Shown: positions 4,857 to 47,775 of the stretch, in pieces
How positions within the stretch are numbered: position 1 is the stretch's first letter
How the letters are laid out: each line of letters starts with the position of its first letter
Source of the DNA: Monocercomonoides exilis PA203
Lineage: Eukaryota; Protista; Preaxostyla
Reading direction: 5' to 3'
NCBI GenBank assembly: GCA_001643675.2
Contig: LSRY02000025.1
Span: 620,001 to 684,000, forward strand
DNA: 64,000 nucleotides
The notes under the pieces: model-generated
Told to the model about the DNA's origin: nothing
The model's database searches: none
What the model saw: the letters and a program-made list of their open reading frames with translations, nothing else
Position numbers and translations under genes: made by a program

Positions 4857-6303
4857 TTAGTCAACAAACACCTCGCTGGTCATGTTGGTCCACAGTTGTC
4901 TTCTTCCCACAACACTCATCCCGCTCCCCACTTTCGCAACATCCCCCTTCCCGCTCGTTTCTGACCCAACCAACACAGTGCTGTCACATTCGAAGCTCGC
5001 TGCAATCTTCTCTTGACTCTTTTCACACAGCCCCAACTTCAGAATCAACAAAGCCAAAGACTGAACCTCCCCGCCTCCCGCAGACGACAACGAAGAAGGT
5101 GTGGCAAGCGATATCCCTGCCCCTGACACTGCCCCCTCGCTGTACTCACTCGCCACTCTGCCCTGCTGAGAATGCAGCTTCTTCTCCTTCTCAATACCCA
5201 CATCAATCAGCTCCACCTTCTCATTCATCGCTACCAGCTGCTGCAGCTCCTTCACATCTGTGTTATTCTTCTCGTTCAGCTCCAGTATCTTCCTCTCTCG
5301 CATCCTTTGATCTTGTCATTCTGCTGCAGCTGCTCCACCAGCCCGTTCGTCCGCTTCGAGATCCGCTCGTAATCCCGGATCTTCTGCAGTAGCATGACGA
5401 ACTCTGAATTCCGCTTCTCCATCTCCTGCTTCGCCTCCTCGTGCAGCTCCATTAGCTCCGGAATCTGCCGCACCATCCCCTCCTTCTCCACTCCCAGCTC
5501 CACAACATGCCCCTCGCACTTTCCGTCCGTCTTGCTTAGCGTCTGAGCAGCGTTCGCCTTTGTCTCCTCCAGGTCTTCCTTCTTGTTCTTCAGCTCTACC
5601 CCTCTTCACACGCCGCAACTCTTAGCCTCTTCACTTCTTCGTCCAATTTCACAACCACACTCTCGACAACTGCAATTGCCATATCTGCAGCGAAGAGTTT
5701 AAATTGATCGTTAATCGACAATAACTCATTCACATCTGCTGCTGCAAAGATCCGCTTGCTTCCCGACTTCGTGCCAACTTTCACTGCACGCGACGGAAGC
5801 TGCCCCATCAGCGAAACCGAAAGCATCGCCGAAAGCGCCACATCGTACGCACACACAACACCCCCATACAGCACCCCCCGCCGCGTCACAACATATCCAT
5901 GCAGTGTCTGCAGCGACAGCGGCATGTGCCGCCCAAACACCCCAGCCGCCTCAGGTTCCACAATCCTCAGCCGCCTCTCTGTGTCATCCATAGCTCCGGT
6001 CGATGTGTATGACGCTGCCACAGCAGATGCATCCGAAGGGTCAATCGCAGGTGCTGATAATGATGGCTGATCATCTCCTGCTGCCTTCTTCTCTTCGCTT
6101 TTCCGCCTCCGGAATGGCGAAGTTGATCGGCGTGACGCTCCTGTTGAAGAAGACGAAGAAGACAAAGGCGCTGAGTTCAGAGACAACTGAATCGCATCAA
6201 CTCCCGCAATAAGCTTTTTGATACAACTCATCGCACAAAATTGCAGCGCCTTTCGTGTCACAAAAACAAAGTCCATATTCAAATAAGAAACGTCAATCAT
6301 CAC
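4857..6303 (-). pseudogene. Frameshifted gene for a coiled-coil protein
   Basis: Protein-like text passes through three frames (...KLDEEVKRLRVA / VKRVELKNKKEDLEETK...QQNDKIK / RERKILELNEKNNTDVKELQQL) with shifts near 5610 and 5303 and no AT-rich intron-like gap. Confidence 0.6.
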
Positions 6304-7476
6304 AGAAATCTCATCTTTTTGATATAATGGAAAAGAAAGAACAGAATTTCTTTTGAAAAGACTTGAAATGAGAAAAAATAGATGAGAAAAAAAAGAAAAT
6401 GAAAAGTTGAAAGCTATTTAAGACATAATTCATGTTATGATTCAAAACATGAGATGCCATTTCTTTTTTGAATTTTTTTGCAAAAGTACATTAAATGCAA
6501 GAAATTGTAGTTGTCAATTATTTATTTATAATAAAACTAAAAATTGCTCTATGCAAACAACTTTTTGAATTTCTTTCAATTCAATGAGGACAGTATCGAT
6601 GAAATTTTCTTATTTAACAATTTCTGATAAAATACTCATATTAAAGCAAGTTAAAATCTATCTGTTTTTCAACATAGAAATATATTTAAAAAGAATTCTC
6701 CTGACAATATATTAAACATTTAAACCAACTGTTGAAATGAAAACAAAGAAATATAAACAAATTCTTCTGTGACTTCAAAAAACAAGAAAAATATTATTTA
6801 AATCATAAAAGTGATTCAATAGTAAATTGGGTATTTGAAATCTATTTTATAAAACCGCAATATTTGGGGATAGGGGGCAAAACTCAATAGAATAACATTC
6901 AGCAATATATAATGGTAACGGAATGATCAACATTTTTTGATCATTTGTGATCTGATTTTCAGATCAATTAATATTTTGTGACTTTTCAAAAAAAATTACC
7001 CTAATATGTTTTGATTTTGATTATAAAAATTCGTTCAGAGATAATTAATTTATATTCAACATCTTCTGCTTCGTTAGAATCTCATATTTTGATTGCAATT
7101 TTCTCCTTTAAATTCCTGTTGACAAAATAATATGCATCCGAAAATTTCTCAATATTCATTGGTTCTTTTTCCATCTGTGGAAACTGGCACATGTGATTTT
7201 CATGCAGAATGTTTACAGGTGTATTTTTTCCTGAAGAGGAAAATTTTTTATTTTTGAATTATTTTGATGTGCATTTTTCATTCAAAATTTGTAACTCAAA
7301 ATTATTTTCTGGATTCGGAGTTTTTTTTCTTTTTTTTTTTTAATAAATCAATTTTTCTAAAAACTTTTCTCCTCATTTTTTGTGTACACCAATAAAAAAG
7401 TCAAAATAAAACAAAGACCATATTCATCTTCTTTTGCTCCATTTGACTGAACAGAAACAATAAGAGAAAGAAAATT

Positions 7477-38600: not shown

Positions 38601-40293
38601 TCACAACTTCCAGTGCTCGCATTCCTTTTCGCACATATCGTTTGCCAGCTTGCACTGCCCAACACATCCATCGTATCTTTGGAAGCAAAAACCAGTGCAA
38701 ATGACAATCGGAGGCGTATCAGTCGATTCGACTTGCGCTTGCGAAGAGAGTGTTGACTGCTGATGTGGAGATGAAGATGATGAATAAGAAGAAGGAGAAG
38801 AAGGAGAAGAGGAGGAGGAGGAGGAAGAAGGTGAAGTTGAAGAAGAATCTTGCTGGCTACCAGACTTTTTGAATGCTACAAATCCTCCAGCGTTTGTCAA
38901 CGACAAAGAAGAAAGTGAAGACGAGGCGTAAGACGATGAAAGAGGTTTGTATCCAGCTTCAGCGTTTTTGTAAATGATGTTATACAGCGACGGGTGCATG
39001 TTAGCTGTGACGTCGCTCATATTCACCAGCTCTGGCGGCTTTCCAGTCGCAAACAAAATCGTCTCAGGTGCCTTTTCTGCCTGCTCACCAGGCAATTTTG
39101 ACACCTTTCGGCCACGCTCCCCTTTTCGCTGTGTTGCTGAGGCTGAGGCTGAAGCAGCACCAGGGGCGCTTTTGGGTATTGTCGGCTGGGCAGCCAGCAG
39201 AATGCTCTGAACACACGACGAGATGCACTGCTCGCTCATCTGCGCTGTGCAGAAAAGAGAACATCCTGAGGAAATTGGCGGTGTTGGTCATTTTATATCA
39301 TTATTTTTTTTATTAAATTAAATGGATGAAAAATAAAATAAAATAAAAATATTAAACATTACAAATGAGGCAATTTTAAAGAAAATGAGAGAAAAATAAA
39401 GAAAGAAAGAAAGAAAAAACCTTCTAATTCTTTCTTGCAATCACCACGACAAGTCAGTTGTTCTCTCTTGGTATCCAACTCTTCTTCATTTGCAACTTGT
39501 TCTTTTGTACGTTTCGAGCCAGTTCCTTCACCGCCTCTTAGCGACTCTGCAAGCTCCTCCATTTTTTCCCATTCAGACGCTTCTTCGCTGCACTGTTGCA
39601 TTTGTAGCAAGCACATAAGTCTCCCTCTTCTTCCTCTAAGAACAGCACGAGTTCTGCAGTCGTCTTCTCCATCACCAACAGACGAATCTGAAACAGAAAA
39701 TCCACAAAGGCCAGTGATGTCAGCGTGAAGACTCTGCTCATTGTGCGAAAAACATCGTTTCAATTGTTCTTCGCATTCTTCTTTTGGAGAAAGTTTAGCG
39801 TTGGATGCCTTCAGTGGAAGAGAATTCTTTGTTACTGTGTGATTTGTTTGGACTTTTGATTCATGAGTTGCATATCTTGGAAGTTCTAGTGGAGGAGGCT
39901 CAGATGAAGTAAAAGAAGGTTTCACTTTTTGATTTATTAATTGTTTGTAATTGTGTCGTTTTTGATGTTCTGCATTGTTGATTGGACATGTCTCTGCACA
40001 ATGATCAAGGGATTTTTTAGCCTTTTTATTGCAGATATCTTCAGTGGTATCGCACATAGAAAAGCATTCACTAGATTTTTCTTTCTCACAAGCTTTTATG
40101 CACCGAACTTTCGCATCTGCGCATACAATCTTTTCTGCCTTTTCTTCCTCTGCGTCATATTCATAATGTTTATGAAAATCCAACAAATGTTTAAAAATTA
40201 AAAACCTTTACAAAGATGATTGCACAATTCTTCTTCAGAAGCAGCATAGAGCAATCTGACAATGCACATAACCAATAAAAACATAAAGTGCAT
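38601..40293 (-). CDS. Secreted cysteine-rich protein with repeated CxxxC motifs (about 486 aa). Exons 40293-40206, 40149-39421, 39244-38601
   Basis: Signal-peptide-like MHFMFLLVMCIVRLLYA; motifs CNHLC, CIKAC, CFSMC, CAETC, CRGDC, CISSC, CTGFC, CVGQC, CEKEC; two GT-AG introns give a 1461-nt frame. Confidence 0.8.
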
Positions 40294-40896
40294 ATGAAAT
40301 TAATGTGGCACGATATTTAGAGCTCCACCCATTTTGTAGAAATCACTGTAAATCAAAACATAACTCAAGTAAAAATATTTTATGGTTCACACAATCAAAA
40401 TAGGAGAAACATTTTTACTCCTTTATTATTGTTTTCAAATCACAATACTCACATTTGTTTCATTTTATCTCATTGAATATAGAATCAATAGAACACAATG
40501 ACATTCTGAAAAAATATCATTTTTGCTAATGAATCTTCTTTGACTTAAAGCTTTGACATTGATGAAAATGAAAGAAAATATGTTGTTTCTGCAACAACTT
40601 TTTGAGAATTACATATCTGAAATTTCAAATGTCTTTTGAGATTTCATGGAAAATGGAATAATTACACTTTTCGTAGCTTTGCAATCGATCAAATAAATTA
40701 ACAGCAAACAAAAACTTATTCCATGCACATAAACATTAATCTTTATTTCGGTAAAAAACAACAAATAAAACATAAAAACGATGAAAGTGTAGTTGCAAGA
40801 AGTGAAAAAAACCAACAATTTTAATATATTTAAAAAAATAACATTTTTTTAAAAATAGAAGAAATGAATGAAAGAGGAAACAGCAGTGAAGTGTGA

Positions 40897-43800
40897 TTAA
40901 GAGTCCAGAAAGTCGAGCATCGTCTTCCACGCATCTTTCTCCAAGTTGATCGTCGCCAGCTTCGTCGCAGCATCAGAGGGCATCCCAGGCACAGCCGGCC
41001 TCCCAATCGACGGCAGGAAAGGCGGCCACAAATCAACACTGCAGGGCAGTTTGATGTGCTTCCAGGTAAGCTCTTTCTCCTGCTGCATCTGCGACGGGTC
41101 GAACATCACCGACCCTCCCTCGCGTCCGTACGAGTACCCAAACACCGACGAGCCAAGCCCCGTCGGCGCCCCCATCAGCGACGGCGTCCGTCCTTGAGCA
41201 TTCGACTGCCCAAACAGCACAGACGATGTGTCTCCTCCAACAGCATTTCCTCCACTTCCACCAGCCACACTCGCACTTGCACTGCCACTTGCATCGTTTC
41301 CTCCGCCCATCGGCCCAGGCGTCCCAGAGACTGCCGTGTCTTCGTGGGTCAGATGTGCCGTGTGCACACTTTCTGAGTCATTCGAGCTTGTTCGTGATGC
41401 TCCCAGAGAAGAAGATGCCAATGGAGATGATCCAATCCCTGTTCCTCCCTGTTGCCCCAGACTCGCACTCGACGAGGCTGTTGAGAGAGGCGGCTGTGAA
41501 CCGCTGCCGGCACTGAGTGTGCTGTGGGACGAGCTCAGCGACGAGATCGGGTTCAGTGGAGAGGTGCCAAGATATCCTGTCTTCCCTCCTCCTCCTCCTG
41601 TCATCGTGCCAACTTTGCTCATGCTCATCCCCATTCCCATCGTCATTCCTATGCCTCCTGCACCACCACCTCCCATCATCCGCTTCCGCTTCTTCCTCCT
41701 GTCGTTCTTCTCTTTCTCCAGCGCCATTCGTGCCACGAGTGTCTCGCACATCGACGTCGACGGCCACACTGTGTCATTGTCGAACGACACAAGCAGAATA
41801 TCTCCGATGCATTTCTCCGGGCGGATAGCAGCCGCGTCCAGATCTGAGGGTGATGCACGCGCCAGTGCCCTTTCATAGAACCTGGAGGTGTTTGTCATCT
41901 CGAACGAGGAGTAGTAGCTTTCGTCGAGGGGAAGCTGGAGATACGGCAGTACAGCGCCTTCAAACGTGAACGGCGGGCGGGGCTTTGAATGGTCCGTCGG
42001 GCGAGGCGCCTCGAAGATGTGGGAAGGCGGCGAAATGGCGATGATCTTGTTGAACATCGTGGTGAACCGCGACGCGAGGGAGAGCAAATACATAGCACCT
42101 GTGCGGTATCCGATGCAGTGCACCTGCGAGAAGTCAAGTGCAGAGCAGTACGGCTGCGTCGTCCGCAGCTTGTCCAGCAGCATCAGCACGCCTTCAATCG
42201 GAACACAGCGCGACAGCCTCGGAAGAGTACCCTCTGGACGCGTGTCCTGATACGCTACTGCAAACGAGGCAAAGCCGTGTGACGCCAACAGCGCTGCCAC
42301 ATGGCCAGACCACACAAACCCGCCCTTTGCCAGCGTCGGTCCACCCCCAGCAGCCATAATGATGACCACCGGAAGCAGCTCCTGCTCGTTGTTTTCGCTG
42401 TCTCCGTCGCCAATGATGTTGCCGTTGGCATCCACATTCAAATTATTGTTGTTTTCTCCTTCTCCAGTTGCGCTGCGTGGTGGAACAGACGTGTGTGTCG
42501 AGTGCAGCTGAGATGGTGATTGAGAAGGCGTGGCAGAAGCAGATGTCGGTGCTGAAGGGGTTGCCGTTCCGTCTTTTGCTTCTTTTCCGTTGTTTGACAT
42601 ATCACCTGTCAAATTTTCGTTATCGTGCTCATGTTGTGCTTCTCCTCCGGCTGATTCGGAATTGCTCTGCCTTTCAAGTTGCTCTCCATTTTCTCTCTCT
42701 TCGTGTTCTGAATGAGGAGTCCCCATGCTTTCACCACCAGTTTCACCTGGGTTCATCCCCAAATCATCAGCACTTCCTTCTCCTTCTCCTTCTCCCTTTT
42801 GACTCCTCTGCTGCTCTGCTCCATTCTCCATCTCCTGCGACACATCCAATCCAGGCGCAAACCCTTCTTGCCTCTGTTGATCCTGATCCTGTTCTTGAGT
42901 CATATCATATTGCTCGTATTTCTGTGAGAAGTCCGGAAGCGGCGGCAGGAATGCCCTGACACCGATGCCTTCAATCTCCCAGCTCTCAATCTCTGTGTCT
43001 TCAGTCACATCAGACGAGATCCACGTCCTTCGCATCTCAACCGACGCTGCCAGGTTGTCCTTTCCCAGTGTGATGTCCAGACGATACGTCAGGTCTTCCA
43101 AAGAGCGTGTGTCTTCCAGGAACGTCTGGCACTGGTTGTTCAGACACATCTCGAACCGTGGCGGAATCCTGCCTCTGCGAATGCGACGCTTCTTCTTCTT
43201 CTTCTTCACGACCATCATCTTCTGAGTGCCCGCTGCATGTGGTGAGCCATCGTAGTTCATTCCTGTTCCACCCATACCTGATGAGCTTGGTGTTGTCGGT
43301 GACATCATCACAGACCCTCCGTCTCCTCCTTCGCTTGCACTCATTCCGCGTGCATGCTGGTTATCTCCCTCTTCTCCTTCTCCGTTCAGCTCCCCAGAAT
43401 CCACGCGTCCTTCGATGCTGAGCCGTCTTTCGTGCTTCTCCCTTCCTTTCCCGTTCGACTGCGGAGTCTGCTCGTCTCTTGTGGTTGATGCGAGCGTATC
43501 TTCAGGCACTTCATGAATGATTCCAGTTGTGTCAATTATCCCCATCGCATTCCCTGCCCCGCCCATTCCAATGCTCTCTCCATCCACTACTGCCCCACCC
43601 ACTCCGTATCCCTCACCAAACTCGCCTTCCTCTGCCTCTCCGACAAGCTCGGCTCCAATCTCCTCCAGCGTCTGGCCTGTCGCTTCCACAACATACTCAC
43701 CATCTTCCCTTTCAACCATCAGAATCCTTTCGAGATATTCTTCTTCCTCGTCTGCTTCCTCCATCTTCCCAACCATCTCATCATCGTCGTCATCAGCCTC

Positions 43801-46765
43801 TTCTGCCTCCATCCTTCGCTTCTCCTCTTCCTCCATCTCTTCAATCTGCATCTGCTCCTCAATGCTCAGCTTCTCTCTCTCCCTCAAAATCGCCTTCCTC
43901 GTCTGCTCATCCATCGCCGACGTGATCATCGTCATCCCAGAAATCGCTTGAGTTGCCCCTCCATTCGAACCCGATCCAGAAGCAGAGCCACTTGCAGACG
44001 CACTCCCTGGAGTTTCTGCATTGTCTACTGCATCTTTGTCTGCTGCGCCGCCTCGCTCGCTTCCAACACGCGACCCGCTGCGCGCACCACCGCCAGCACC
44101 GCCAATAGCCATGCTCTTCTCCTTCTCTGGTTCCATCGCCCAGAAGAAGCCCATTGCATCCGCCAGTGTGTACATCCCAGTTGTTGGTGATGTTGTAGGC
44201 AAAGAGATTGTTCCCTTCCCATCAGACAGGAAATCAGCACGTGAGCGCCACAGCCTTTCCCCGCTGTTTGTTGCAACGATCAGCTCCAGCGTGACAGGGG
44301 TGACAGGCTCCAAGTCAACCACTTTGATCACAAAGGCCGTGTCGTGCTCAGAACCTCCCTGCGCATCGGAGGGTGTGAACTCCACACGAACAGGGCGGAT
44401 CGAGTCAGTCTGCTTGCGCAGTGCTGCTTGTGTGGTCATCCATTCGAGTGCTGGGTTTTTCCCGGTTGTCAGCAGAGTGCGGTTCTTCTGTACGTCCTGA
44501 AGGAAGTAGATGAGGTTGAGACTGCCCTTAGCGATACCGAGATTCACACGGGCCTGAGATGTTTGTATCAAGTGATAGACAATAGCATTTAAGAAGAATA
44601 GAAATTGAGAGTGAAAGTCAAAAATAAAAACAATAATAATAATAATAAAATTGCTAAAAAATGGTTTTTATATATGCTCAATAGATTCAAAATAATAAAG
44701 AATTAATCTTTAAAGCTCAATTCCTTCCCCTGAAACATTTCACACTACAACTTCAACTCGTCTCTTCTCTCACACATACCTGCTCGATAAACCCGCTCTG
44801 GTTCTGTGGCACAATCTTCATTGTGGCTGTTGCACCGACTGTCAGTCTGTGTGCTGTGTGTTGCGCATTTCCTTTCTTCTCCTTCCCTTGGCCCATCAGC
44901 TCATCATCCTGATCATCCTCCCCAAACCCTCTCCCTCGCATCTTCTCTTTCCCTTTGTCTTTCCCTTTCCCTTTCGCCCCAACCCCAATCTTCGTCAAAA
45001 TCGCTGCTTGCTGCTCTGCCTGCCATTTCTCCTGCGAAGTCTGTGTTGCTTTCCTCGCAGATTTGAAGTTCTTCTCAAAAAATTGAATAGCTTCATTGAA
45101 TTTCCCTGTCTTAATCAGAATCTGCCCAAGTGTCGATGTCTGCTCTCTTGTGTTCTCTTCCGCATCACCTCCTTCTTTCTCGCTCCCAACGCTCGCCACT
45201 GACTTCTTGCTCCTCTTCATCGACGCCCCAAAGCTCCTCTCTTTCGTCTCGTCCAGATCTTTCCCTTCGCCTGCTCCTTCTCCTCCTTCTGCCCCCTCCG
45301 CTCCACTTCCTCCTTCCGCATTCCCTCTCTCTGCAATTGTCATTCTCAGCTCAAGATACTTCACAGCCTCGTCCATCCTCCCAACAGCTGTAAATGCGCC
45401 TGCAAGCGCATGACACGCCTCCTCTGCACCTGTCGTGTCTCCTCTCGACTCGCACAGCTCGAGCAGCTGCTGGCTGTGCTCAATAGCCTGCTGATAGTCT
45501 TTGATCTGCTCACAGTGAGTCGCCAGTCGCCGCAGCGCCCGCACCTCACACGCTACGTTGCCAGACGCACGTGCCATCTCCAAAAATTTGGTCAAGTAAA
45601 GTGTCAGCTCTGCCGATATCTCCTGCAGCTTTGTGTCGTACAACGCTGCCTGCTGCGCTGCTGACTGTTTTTCTTGCTGGCTGGCTGACGAAACAGAAAT
45701 AGAAGAGCGATGTGATGCCAATGACATTGTCGTGGGATCCTTGCCACGGTCTCCCAACACTGACGCATTCAGGTCGCTTCCAATGGTCGAGCCCAGGGTG
45801 TCTCGATCTCCAAAAAGCGATTCTCTTTCTGTGCCCAAATGAGATGCATCAGACATCCTCCGAGAACTCATCAAGTCTCCTCCACCACCAACGGCACTGC
45901 TTCCCTGTGAAATTGCGCCCATCCCTAACAGTGCAGTTGAAAGTGACTGAAGACTCGGGCCTCCAAACATCGATCGCGCAGTACGGTCGCCTCCTGAAGC
46001 TGTTCCACTGGATGCTCCTGCAGCTCTTCTTCGTCCTCCTCTCCCTTCGGCTCCTGCTCCCTGAGTGGGATGGGAAGCCATGTGTTGCTGTTTATCGCTT
46101 TCTAGCTTGTCTGCCATTTGCTCATAAATTTGCATCAAATAGTCCTTTCCGGACTGCTGTTCTTCCGAAGTACCACAATCATTTACAAGATTCAAATACC
46201 GCTCATAATATGAAATAGCCTCCTCTAATCGTTGAAGTGTTTGGTTTCCTTTTGCAAGATAAATACACGCATCTGCTTGAAGTGATGGGAGTTGCGCGTT
46301 CGTAGCACAATCAAGTGCTTTTTTGAAAAAATGCAAAGCATTTCGAATGTCTCCAATTGAATTAAAAAATGTTGCTGTTTTTTTATATGATTCGTACACA
46401 AGTTCAGGATTGCCTTCCCTTTCTGCTGTTTCTGCTTGGCATAAATGATCCTTTAAATACGGTAAGCTTACAAATAGATCACGTTTTCTTTTCTGTTCTT
46501 GTGAAACATCTTTGGTTTTCTTATTTTCCATTTGTTCAGCAGCTGTTTCAATCCAATCAACATCTTTAGTAACTCTAAAAAATTCAGAAAATGAACTTAC
46601 ACATCCGCTTGTAAGAATTTCAAGGCAGTAATTATGTCTTGGAGTGTTGCTTGTCATCGAAGAATCAGAAAGAGGTAATTCAGGTATTGCTGTGAAAACT
46701 GAAGGTGGTGCATGTCTAGGTATCTTTTTCGTAGGCCTTGCTAATGTTGCTTTAGCAGAGTTCAT
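40897..46765 (-). CDS. TTC29-like TPR protein fused to an acyl-CoA thioesterase/BAAT-like alpha/beta-hydrolase (about 1880 aa). Exons 46765-44780, 44553-40897
   Basis: RHNYCLEILTSGCVSSFSEFF and LKDHLCQAETAEREG resemble the TTC29 N-terminus, followed by TPRs and EQ|ARVNLGIAKG spanning a phase-0 intron (CAG|GTATGT...CTCAG). Then ACOT/BAAT N-domain (PVTLELIV...WRSRADFLSDGKGTISL...DAMGFFWAMEP) and C-domain (AALLASHGFASFAVAY, DNDTVWPS, DAWKTMLDFL). Confidence 0.85.
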
Positions 46766-47775
46766 CACGTTTTTGAAAATTAGTTCCTTTTAAAAAGGAA
46801 AAAGAAAAGTTTGAAATGAACGGTTGTGGTTGGATCAGAGTGTCCATTATTATGATGTTTGAGATATAAAATTGATTTCTTTTGTTTATATAATCAATAA
46901 AAGCAACATTATTTCACGCTATGAAAAGGACGTATATGTTTTAGATTTTTATTTTGAGAAAATGAGAAAATTTGGATTGTTTAACCAATCGACTATTGGA
47001 ATTTTATAAATTCAATTGATGCAGAAGCTAAATAATTTTTTATAATTTTGTTAAACGTGAAACATGTAATGAAAATTGTTTGATTATTATTATTCACTTA
47101 TTTTTATTATTGAATTCGAAATATTTAGGTTTGAAAACAATTTGAAAATTTTCTTTAAGGAAGTGGGAAAAGGGGCGAGAAAATTAAAAAGAAGCAAAAA
47201 TGCCTTTAAATATAACAAATTTTGAAAAGGAAAAAAGAAGAATATTGAAAAACTCCCCAAAAATCTTTTTTTCAAAATATTTGACAATTTTGTTACAATC
47301 ATTGGAATCATTGTTAGTCTACTTAAAATTTAACCAAGATTTTCTGGATTCGTTTGCCTTCTTGGGTGTTGTGTAATTTTGTTCATTGCTTTCTTCTTGA
47401 CTTTTCTTCTGGAAGATTTGTTATTGCATTTGATGCATTTTAAGCAAGAACACAACAGAAATACAATTTTTTTCAATTGAATTTGAAAAAAAAAATTGTT
47501 GCCTCTGTGTGTGCAGAACAATTTGTGGATGCATCTTAGAAATTGCAGAAATTATGTCTGCTTATTCTTTTTTTCTCAAAATGTCTCTTTTTCAAATTTC
47601 AACAATAAAATCGAAAGCCAAGCTTCTTGAAAGAAAGGAATTAATTATTCATTTATAAAATAACCTTCCAAGAGAAATAAGTTAATATATTTCCATATAT
47701 TTCAGGGTTATTAAATACCACTATTTTCTTTGATCATAAATACCACACTCGATCAATTTTTCATTTTTCCACTAA

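Follow-up and report, generated by a model that had tools for sequence, protein, structure and literature searches.

Loss of TTC29 causes sperm flagellar defects in mammals. Within the α/β-hydrolase superfamily, pseudoenzymes such as the neuroligins and the NDRG proteins have lost residues of the catalytic triad and keep the fold for binding or scaffolding; to our knowledge, none has been described on an axonemal dynein subunit. The TTC29 orthologue p44 interacts with p38 (ZMYND12) and both proteins act in the docking of inner dynein arm d, the location at this arm and the interaction being known for Chlamydomonas, mouse and human (PMC10629824). Here we analyze gene MONOS_3371 of the oxymonad Monocercomonoides exilis, located on the minus strand of a stretch of 64,000 nucleotides (nt) of contig LSRY02000025.1 (the window, to which all coordinates of the gene refer). 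Its product combines a tetratricopeptide-repeat (TPR) protein of the TTC29/p44 type with a module resembling the type-I acyl-coenzyme A (CoA) thioesterases of the ACOT/BAAT group. We estimate at about 65% the probability that MONOS_3371 is one gene encoding the only TTC29/p44 orthologue of the cell followed by a C-terminal ACOT/BAAT-like module that has lost catalysis and is kept as a non-catalytic module on an axonemal protein.

MONOS_3371 has in common with canonical TTC29/p44 proteins the TTC29-specific N-terminal region, the TPR array, the C-terminal motif ARVNLGIA(R/K)G and the presence as a single copy. However, the canonical proteins retrieved have 131-675 amino acids (aa) and end ~45 residues past the motif, whereas MONOS_3371 carries low-complexity inserts within the TPR array and runs about 1180 residues further into the hydrolase-like module. 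This module shares with ACOT2, ACOT4 and BAAT the two-domain layout, PF04775, the conserved Asp and the PP motif that follows the base, and differs from them by the replacement of Ser by Arg and of His by Val, by three inserts of 190-320 residues and by its fusion behind another protein. In keeping a hydrolase fold with lost triad residues it is like the neuroligins and the NDRG proteins, with which there is no homology beyond the superfamily fold.

The product of MONOS_3371 has 1880 aa (NCBI; database entry P0001). The two minus-strand open reading frames (ORFs) that the preliminary description had joined, 44753..46768 and 40897..44571, are both present in the ORF listing of the window. Exon 1 (44780..46765, with the ATG at 46765) encodes residues 1-662 and exon 2 (40897..44553, with the stop codon at 40897-40899) residues 663-1880 of P0001, as obtained by translating the exons separately; the joined protein was taken solely as the database entry and each exon was searched singly. 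Between them lies a phase-0 intron of 226 nt (44554..44779, GTATGT..AG) with 27% guanine plus cytosine (GC), against about 51-54% in the adjoining exons. On the minus strand the donor boundary 44780|44779 reads GAGCAG|GTATGTGT, the donor GTATGT beginning at 44779, and the acceptor boundary 44554|44553 reads CATCTCAG|GCCCGT, the AG ending at 44554. Retention of the intron leads to an in-frame stop after 8 codons.

Transcript evidence came from contigs of four public RNA runs of a single study, placed on 40880-46790. Contigs of all four runs contain the junction 44552|44779, with exactly 226 nt skipped and 154-255 nt on the shorter side, and a contig covering the intron (44554..44779) was found in none of the four. 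For the two bins overlapping the intron, contig depth equals the prediction from exon-only coverage. One spliced contig joins 43814-44552 to 44779-45315 (X3 record 17) and another joins 43453-44552 to 44779-44941 (X4 record 23). Hence the junction is real, and individual RNA-derived contigs link the TPR half to the thioesterase N-terminal domain. Over 41695-44552 the contigs run colinearly with the genomic sequence, and they extend beyond the ATG of exon 1, to 46790. These data show a single gene whose two halves are spliced into one mRNA with one reading frame. The single canonical phase-0 intron, predicted from the splice sites, is borne out by the exact junction across 44780/44553 in every run, and separate unspliced transcripts are contradicted.

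The solved structure that exon 1 matches best is 8glv_Lf, a subunit of the inner dynein of Chlamydomonas (E 3.3e-15, residues 43-251 against 57-263), and the mammalian TTC29 chains 9fqr, 9d2f and 8j07 match as well. The exon begins with an N-terminal TTC29-specific region (46061-46765); its TPR blocks (about 44966-45640), broken up by low-complexity inserts, match TPR_7, TPR_12 and related TPR families of Pfam. The homology goes on into exon 2: residues 657-690, across the junction 662|663, align to residues 377-410 of the 423 residues of 8glv_Lf. Exon 2 opens with the conserved C-terminal TTC29 motif (44440..44553, residues 663-700, with ARVNLGIAKG at 663-672, colinear with p44 377-410), which in the canonical TTC29 relatives P0005 (470 aa) and P0008 (425 aa) takes the form S-A-R-[VI]-N-L-G-[IM]-A-R-G, about 45 residues before the end. 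Since exon 2 starts inside the TTC29 homology and no stop precedes the hydrolase domains, the hydrolase half belongs to this gene and is not a separate one, as had been argued from the reading frames. The preliminary description had taken FIEQ|ARVNLGIAKG as the last TPR-like helix; the intron does split it, but it is the conserved C-terminal TTC29 motif after the last TPR and not a TPR. Residues 1-235, the TTC29 N-terminal region, have a single match in the whole 82.3-Mb assembly. Together, the solved-structure matches, the motif and the single genome copy confirm that exon 1 and the start of exon 2 are the cell's only TTC29/p44 orthologue.

The remainder of exon 2 alternates between folded segments and low-complexity inserts; the identities given here are to the orthologue of the oxymonad Streblomastix strix. 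The ACOT/BAAT N-terminal β-sandwich domain begins at 44125..44397 (residues 715-805, 58%), where PF04775 matches at profile positions 1-75 of 126 (E 5e-17, 63.5 bits against a cut-off of 27). Insert 1 (43171..44124, 318 residues, 806-1123, 27%) interrupts this domain, whose second part (42940..43170, residues 1124-1200, 45%) ends in the VRAFLPP motif. Searched alone, residues 1124-1200 gave no Pfam match; their colinearity suggests that they correspond to profile positions 77-126 of PF04775. Insert 2 (42379..42939, residues 1201-1387, 17%) is the linker between the two hydrolase domains. The α/β-hydrolase core with R1479 and D1589 (41680..42378, residues 1388-1620) is followed by insert 3 (41074..41679, residues 1621-1822, 21%), which extends from the helix after the Asp strand to strand β8. 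Insert 3 is modelled as disordered, with a predicted local distance difference test score (pLDDT) below 50, and is partially covered by RNA. The module closes with strand β8, the former His loop (V1835) and the C-terminal helix (40900..41073, residues 1823-1880, pLDDT 81-95). Inserts 1 and 2 lie inside colinear RNA contigs and are, hence, coding sequence and not introns.

An AlphaFold model of the α/β half built on the two oxymonad sequences only had a pLDDT of 38 and was unusable, and the modelling was redone with 40 homologues. The second model, on a checked alignment of 49 rows (A10) that includes bacterial and metagenomic relatives, has a core pLDDT of 85-97, construct residues 252-437 being disordered. 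The top Foldseek matches of this model are human ACOT4 (3k2i, E 8e-9) and then ACOT2 (3hlk). VIA-align gave a Z of 22.2 with each of them, with a root-mean-square deviation of 3.5-3.6 over 239-241 aligned residues and 20-23% identity, the next entry having a Z of 17.3. Searches of the PDB with a two-sequence profile yielded ACOT4 matches that were all sub-threshold. Taken with the 63.5 bits of PF04775, the model confirms the ACOT/BAAT identity of both hydrolase domains that had been proposed from motifs, and exon 2 is predicted to encode a complete two-domain type-I acyl-CoA thioesterase (ACOT/BAAT-like) module with the ACOT2/ACOT4 fold. At the level of family profiles, the TPR families and PF04775 were matched, but BAAT_C (PF08840) scored 15.5 bits in M. 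exilis, under its cut-off of 20.9, while the orthologues of S. strix (22.7) and Paratrimastix pyriformis (50.5) exceed it. MONOS_3371 is the sole PF04775 match in the 82-Mb genome and the genome-wide search found no second BAAT_C match, so that the module does not stem from a recent duplication of an active enzyme encoded elsewhere in the genome.

The three motifs on which the loss of catalysis had been argued, IGYRTGA, DNDTVWPS and SVDLWPPFLP, were found and map to the nucleophile, the acid and the base, respectively. R1479 (G-Y-R-T-G; codon CGC, 42103-42105) stands in the nucleophile column, occupied by Ser in 40 of the 42 A10 rows and by Arg in the remaining two, those of the oxymonads. Asp fills the column of D1589 (codon 41773-41775, in the motif D-x-x-W-P-S) in all 42 rows. 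The codons of both residues are covered by RNA contigs with no differences. At the base position is V1835 (codon GTT, 41035-41037): BLASTP sets C-G-H-D-I-C-P-P of P. pyriformis opposite C-S-V-D-L-W-P-P of M. exilis, and homologues with PF04775 or a matching G-H..P..P tail have the His directly before the stretch that aligns to D-L-W-P-P. Whole-row MAFFT alignments put the His loop of the homologues inside the oxymonad insert; in A10 the N-terminal parts and post-His tails were entered as separate unaltered rows, and its His column consists of the two oxymonad rows only. All 40 homologues have the GxSxG Ser, the Asp and the His. The replacement of the nucleophile Ser by Arg, the retention of Asp and the loss of His, now Val, are thus upheld by the homologue alignment and BLASTP, and the same state is found in S. 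strix. Judged from these positions, the module looks like an enzyme turned pseudoenzyme, with the catalytic Ser and His lost and the Asp retained.

The preliminary description had called for a search of other Preaxostyla for the fusion, and it was found in S. strix and P. pyriformis, whose proteins have the order TTC29, PF04775, BAAT_C in common with MONOS_3371. The S. strix orthologue (EZS28_006872, P0002, 1722 aa) agrees with it in architecture and in having the Arg and the Val. Its gene consists of one intron-less ORF of 5169 nt (SNRW01001142.1, L094:2001-7169) with 126 in-frame TAA/TAG read as Gln, the code that we take Streblomastix to use, and the translation is identical to P0002. MONOS_3371 thus differs from it by its intron, which is either a gain on the M. 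exilis side or a loss in S. strix, and by the TAA/TAG codons. One of these in-frame codons occupies the position of the Gln codon with which exon 1 ends in M. exilis. Between the two proteins, overall 48% identical, identity is 61% in the α/β core, 58% and 45% in the two N-domain parts, 57% in the His-loop region and C-terminal helix, 54-73% in the TTC29 parts and 17-27% in the inserts. By this measure the folded parts of the apparently dead module equal the TTC29 half in their conservation between the two oxymonads.

The P. pyriformis protein (KAJ4461357.1, P0004, 1442 aa) has TPRs followed by PF04775 (E 2.8e-18) and BAAT_C (E 3.7e-13). Unlike MONOS_3371, its gene model (L003:3001-9473) comprises about 15 exons, with about 14 short introns of 47-261 nt, many of which have GTCCG as the donor, and encodes an intact triad with G-I-S-R-G, Asp and G-H. 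Since P. pyriformis retains Ser-Asp-His, the module appears to be dead only in the oxymonads. Intron content differs greatly among the three genes, from about 14 in P. pyriformis to one in M. exilis and none in S. strix. A Trimastix marina transcript (EP00771_P001187, P0007, 631 aa) continues about 100 residues beyond the TTC29 motif and ends in a D-T-P-V stretch like the start of PF04775 in Paratrimastix; it is probably an incomplete transcript of this fusion.

A profile of the TTC29 N-terminal region, searched exhaustively, gave 525 proteins, 129 of them at E<=1e-10 and mostly of 350-630 aa, ranked with the oxymonad fragment P0003 at the top, then P0001, and P0004 third. The other matches to the TTC29-specific region all have 131-675 aa, and among the best 150 TTC29-like matches only the Preaxostyla proteins are long. 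Long proteins that matched the profile via generic TPRs only showed no BAAT domain in the eight of eight scanned. A word-indexed protein search with exon 1 returned only the fragment P0003, and searches of the same kind with exon 2 and with the junction region returned only the two oxymonad proteins. The fusion appears, on these comparisons, to be specific to Preaxostyla.

In a tree of the α/β core, unrooted, without eukaryotic ACOT rows and with bacterial rows chosen by motif, the three sequences from Preaxostyla form one group (support 100/98). Its oxymonad stem has 2.59 substitutions per site, the P. pyriformis branch 0.74 and the oxymonad tips 0.32 and 0.40. The long oxymonad stem and the conserved fold indicate a burst of change at the loss of catalysis followed by purifying selection on the dead fold. 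We infer that the fusion dates from the Preaxostyla ancestor, in which an enzyme became tethered to TTC29; catalysis would have been lost on the oxymonad stem and the non-catalytic module kept since.

Bacterial BAAT_C-like hydrolases (L004-L093), which include single-domain forms and forms with PF04775, share 21-31% identity with the M. exilis core and reach 38-52% (best segment) with P. pyriformis. Over 176 residues, one of them has 38% identity with the P. pyriformis core, and a second one attains up to 52% in the segment that matches best. ACOT2/4 were not reached by sequence at E<=1 with P. pyriformis residues 1080-1442. The bacterial proteins have D-x-x-W-P-S in common with the module, and those containing PF04775 also the G-H...P-P/Y..P tail; in contrast to MONOS_3371, they all have Ser-Asp-His, most lack the N-domain and carry an N-terminal hydrophobic segment, and none is fused to TPRs. 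A bacterial family of ~280-320 aa can be recognized among L004-L093, with the hydrophobic N-terminal segment, GxSxG, D-x-x-W-P-S and G-G-H, and without PF04775. BAAT domains are rare in the sampled bacteria (3 of 201 genomes of Gammaproteobacteria, 1 of 301 of Planctomycetota), and the first metagenome scan for relatives of the module gave no matches. The Planctomycetota copy (L007:1006-2128) loses similarity and shows in-frame stops after its first half, and probably represents either a frameshifted pseudogene or a fault in the assembly.

Taking into account that: (i) one spliced mRNA carries both halves; (ii) the TTC29 half is the only one in the genome, and (iii) the folded parts of the module are conserved while Ser and His are replaced, we propose that the pseudo-thioesterase acts as an appendage of TTC29. 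In the model, the TTC29 half would occupy on the doublet microtubule the place that p44/TTC29 has in Chlamydomonas and mammals, the base of inner dynein arm d. From this half the pseudo-thioesterase would hang on flexible low-complexity linkers, serving as a docking surface or as a module that binds acyl-CoA, CoA or fatty acids, and not as a hydrolase. By analogy, then, a scaffold or ligand-binding role at inner dynein arm d may be assigned to it.

Several points weigh against this proposal. RNA contigs are missing over V1835 and the final ~380 nt of the gene (40880-41275, the coding end being at 40897), and the four RNA runs share one study. The M. exilis α/β domain alone falls under the Pfam cut-off of BAAT_C, and the link between TTC29 and the hydrolase in P. 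pyriformis rests on a predicted GT..AG intron of 219 nt (L003 about 6241-6459). The flagellar placement of the Preaxostyla proteins is extrapolated from p44/TTC29 elsewhere, the long disordered linkers would also permit the cleaving off of the module, and a substitute catalytic pair, for instance the oxymonad-specific S1506-H1507 in the loop after strand β6, may exist.

Such a pair would make the module a hydrolase still, acting through a non-canonical site formed by the Ser and His of the SPxSHIFE loop with D1589; alternatively, a different chemistry might operate in which the Arg stabilizes the substrate. S1506 and H1507 are invariant in both oxymonads at positions where the homologues have Ser/Gly and then Ala/Val; besides, D1589 and the glycine-rich loop after strand β3 are kept, and the hydrolase fold is strongly conserved. 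Nevertheless, 40 of 40 homologues use the GxSxG Ser and the His, and the replacement of both residues together on a greatly accelerated branch is the usual signature of a loss of catalysis. Moreover, an Arg side chain at the nucleophile elbow of an α/β hydrolase would fill the entrance of the acyl pocket, and we find residual hydrolysis rather improbable. A change of role of the TTC29 half itself in Preaxostyla, to a TPR scaffold of the axostyle, the preaxostyle or the cytoplasm instead of inner dynein arm d, would agree with the large inserts inside the TPR array and with the only moderate similarity to p44. Yet this is the sole TTC29 homologue of a flagellated cell, and it has conserved both its TTC29-specific N-terminal region and its C-terminal motif, which makes such a change hardly more credible.

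The fusion could also be merely transcriptional or translational, a polyprotein cut in its low-complexity linkers whose pseudo-thioesterase works off the flagellum, uncoupled from TTC29. The linker between the TTC29 motif and the module is short and poorly conserved (residues 701-714, 21% identity), three disordered inserts of 190-320 residues lie inside the module, and in P. pyriformis the two parts might be encoded side by side, should the 219-nt intron not be spliced. On the other hand, the fused order is kept in one frame in two oxymonads that are 48% identical, one of them intron-less; conserved residues (NPA..WMT) stand directly past the TTC29 motif, and no separate start is evident for the hydrolase part. 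We therefore consider cleavage unlikely. That the gene would be an artefact of annotation or assembly, really two separate genes, finds an opening only in the fact that no one contig spans the whole 5.9 kb. The spliced RNA contigs connect 537 nt of exon 1 with 739-1100 nt of exon 2 and run through the PF04775 domain, TTC29 homology goes on into exon 2, and the S. strix gene is a single ORF; the probability of an artefact is practically negligible. A non-catalytic module attached to the TTC29 orthologue remains the reading that we favour.

The fusion is a lineage-specific variant of two well-known families, and its proteins are already public. A full-text literature search for TTC29 or Paratrimastix with thioesterase found no paper on a TTC29-thioesterase architecture. 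The claim that the architecture was undescribed stands in that sense, but orthologues were already in NCBI and UniRef (S. strix, P. pyriformis), so it is not unique to this genome; the P. pyriformis database protein is named after its BAAT domain and the UniRef cluster after TTC29. With an enzyme-derived module of about 1200 residues on its only TTC29 orthologue, the lineage constitutes a natural experiment on attachments at the axonemal site of TTC29. It provides, in addition, a dated transition from enzyme to pseudoenzyme, with the triad intact in Paratrimastix and dead in the oxymonads and the orthologues on hand to compare, and the fusion would be a shared derived character for Preaxostyla. 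Its importance hinges on the module sitting in the axoneme and binding something. A bolder scenario, to which we give little credence, is that the Preaxostyla ancestor tethered an active acyl-CoA thioesterase to inner dynein arm d via TTC29, and that the oxymonads made of it a non-catalytic sensor of acyl-CoA or CoA tuning arm d to the metabolic state. If true, acyl-CoA or protein-deacylation chemistry would have taken place directly on the axoneme of the ancestor, and lipid metabolism would be connected in a new way with the beating of the flagella, possibly tied to the loss of mitochondrial fatty-acid metabolism in the lineage.

Some minor features of the locus deserve mention. The RNA contigs leave 40880-41275 uncovered while the rest of the gene is covered, and GC-rich low-complexity sequence upstream may break the assembly there. 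Depth spikes and a dozen joints with short sides (19-21 nt) occur in the RNA contigs at 42662-42859 and 43058-43255, within code rich in Glu and Lys. Alternative splicing was considered as the source of the ~20-nt joints near 42795 and 43189-43208 and rejected; they sit in Glu-rich low-complexity code and are taken as cross-matches that stem from further transcripts, or further organisms, of the metatranscriptome. About 700 nt downstream of MONOS_3371, on the same minus strand, lies an ORF of 275 aa rich in Cys, Glu and Lys (39359-40186).

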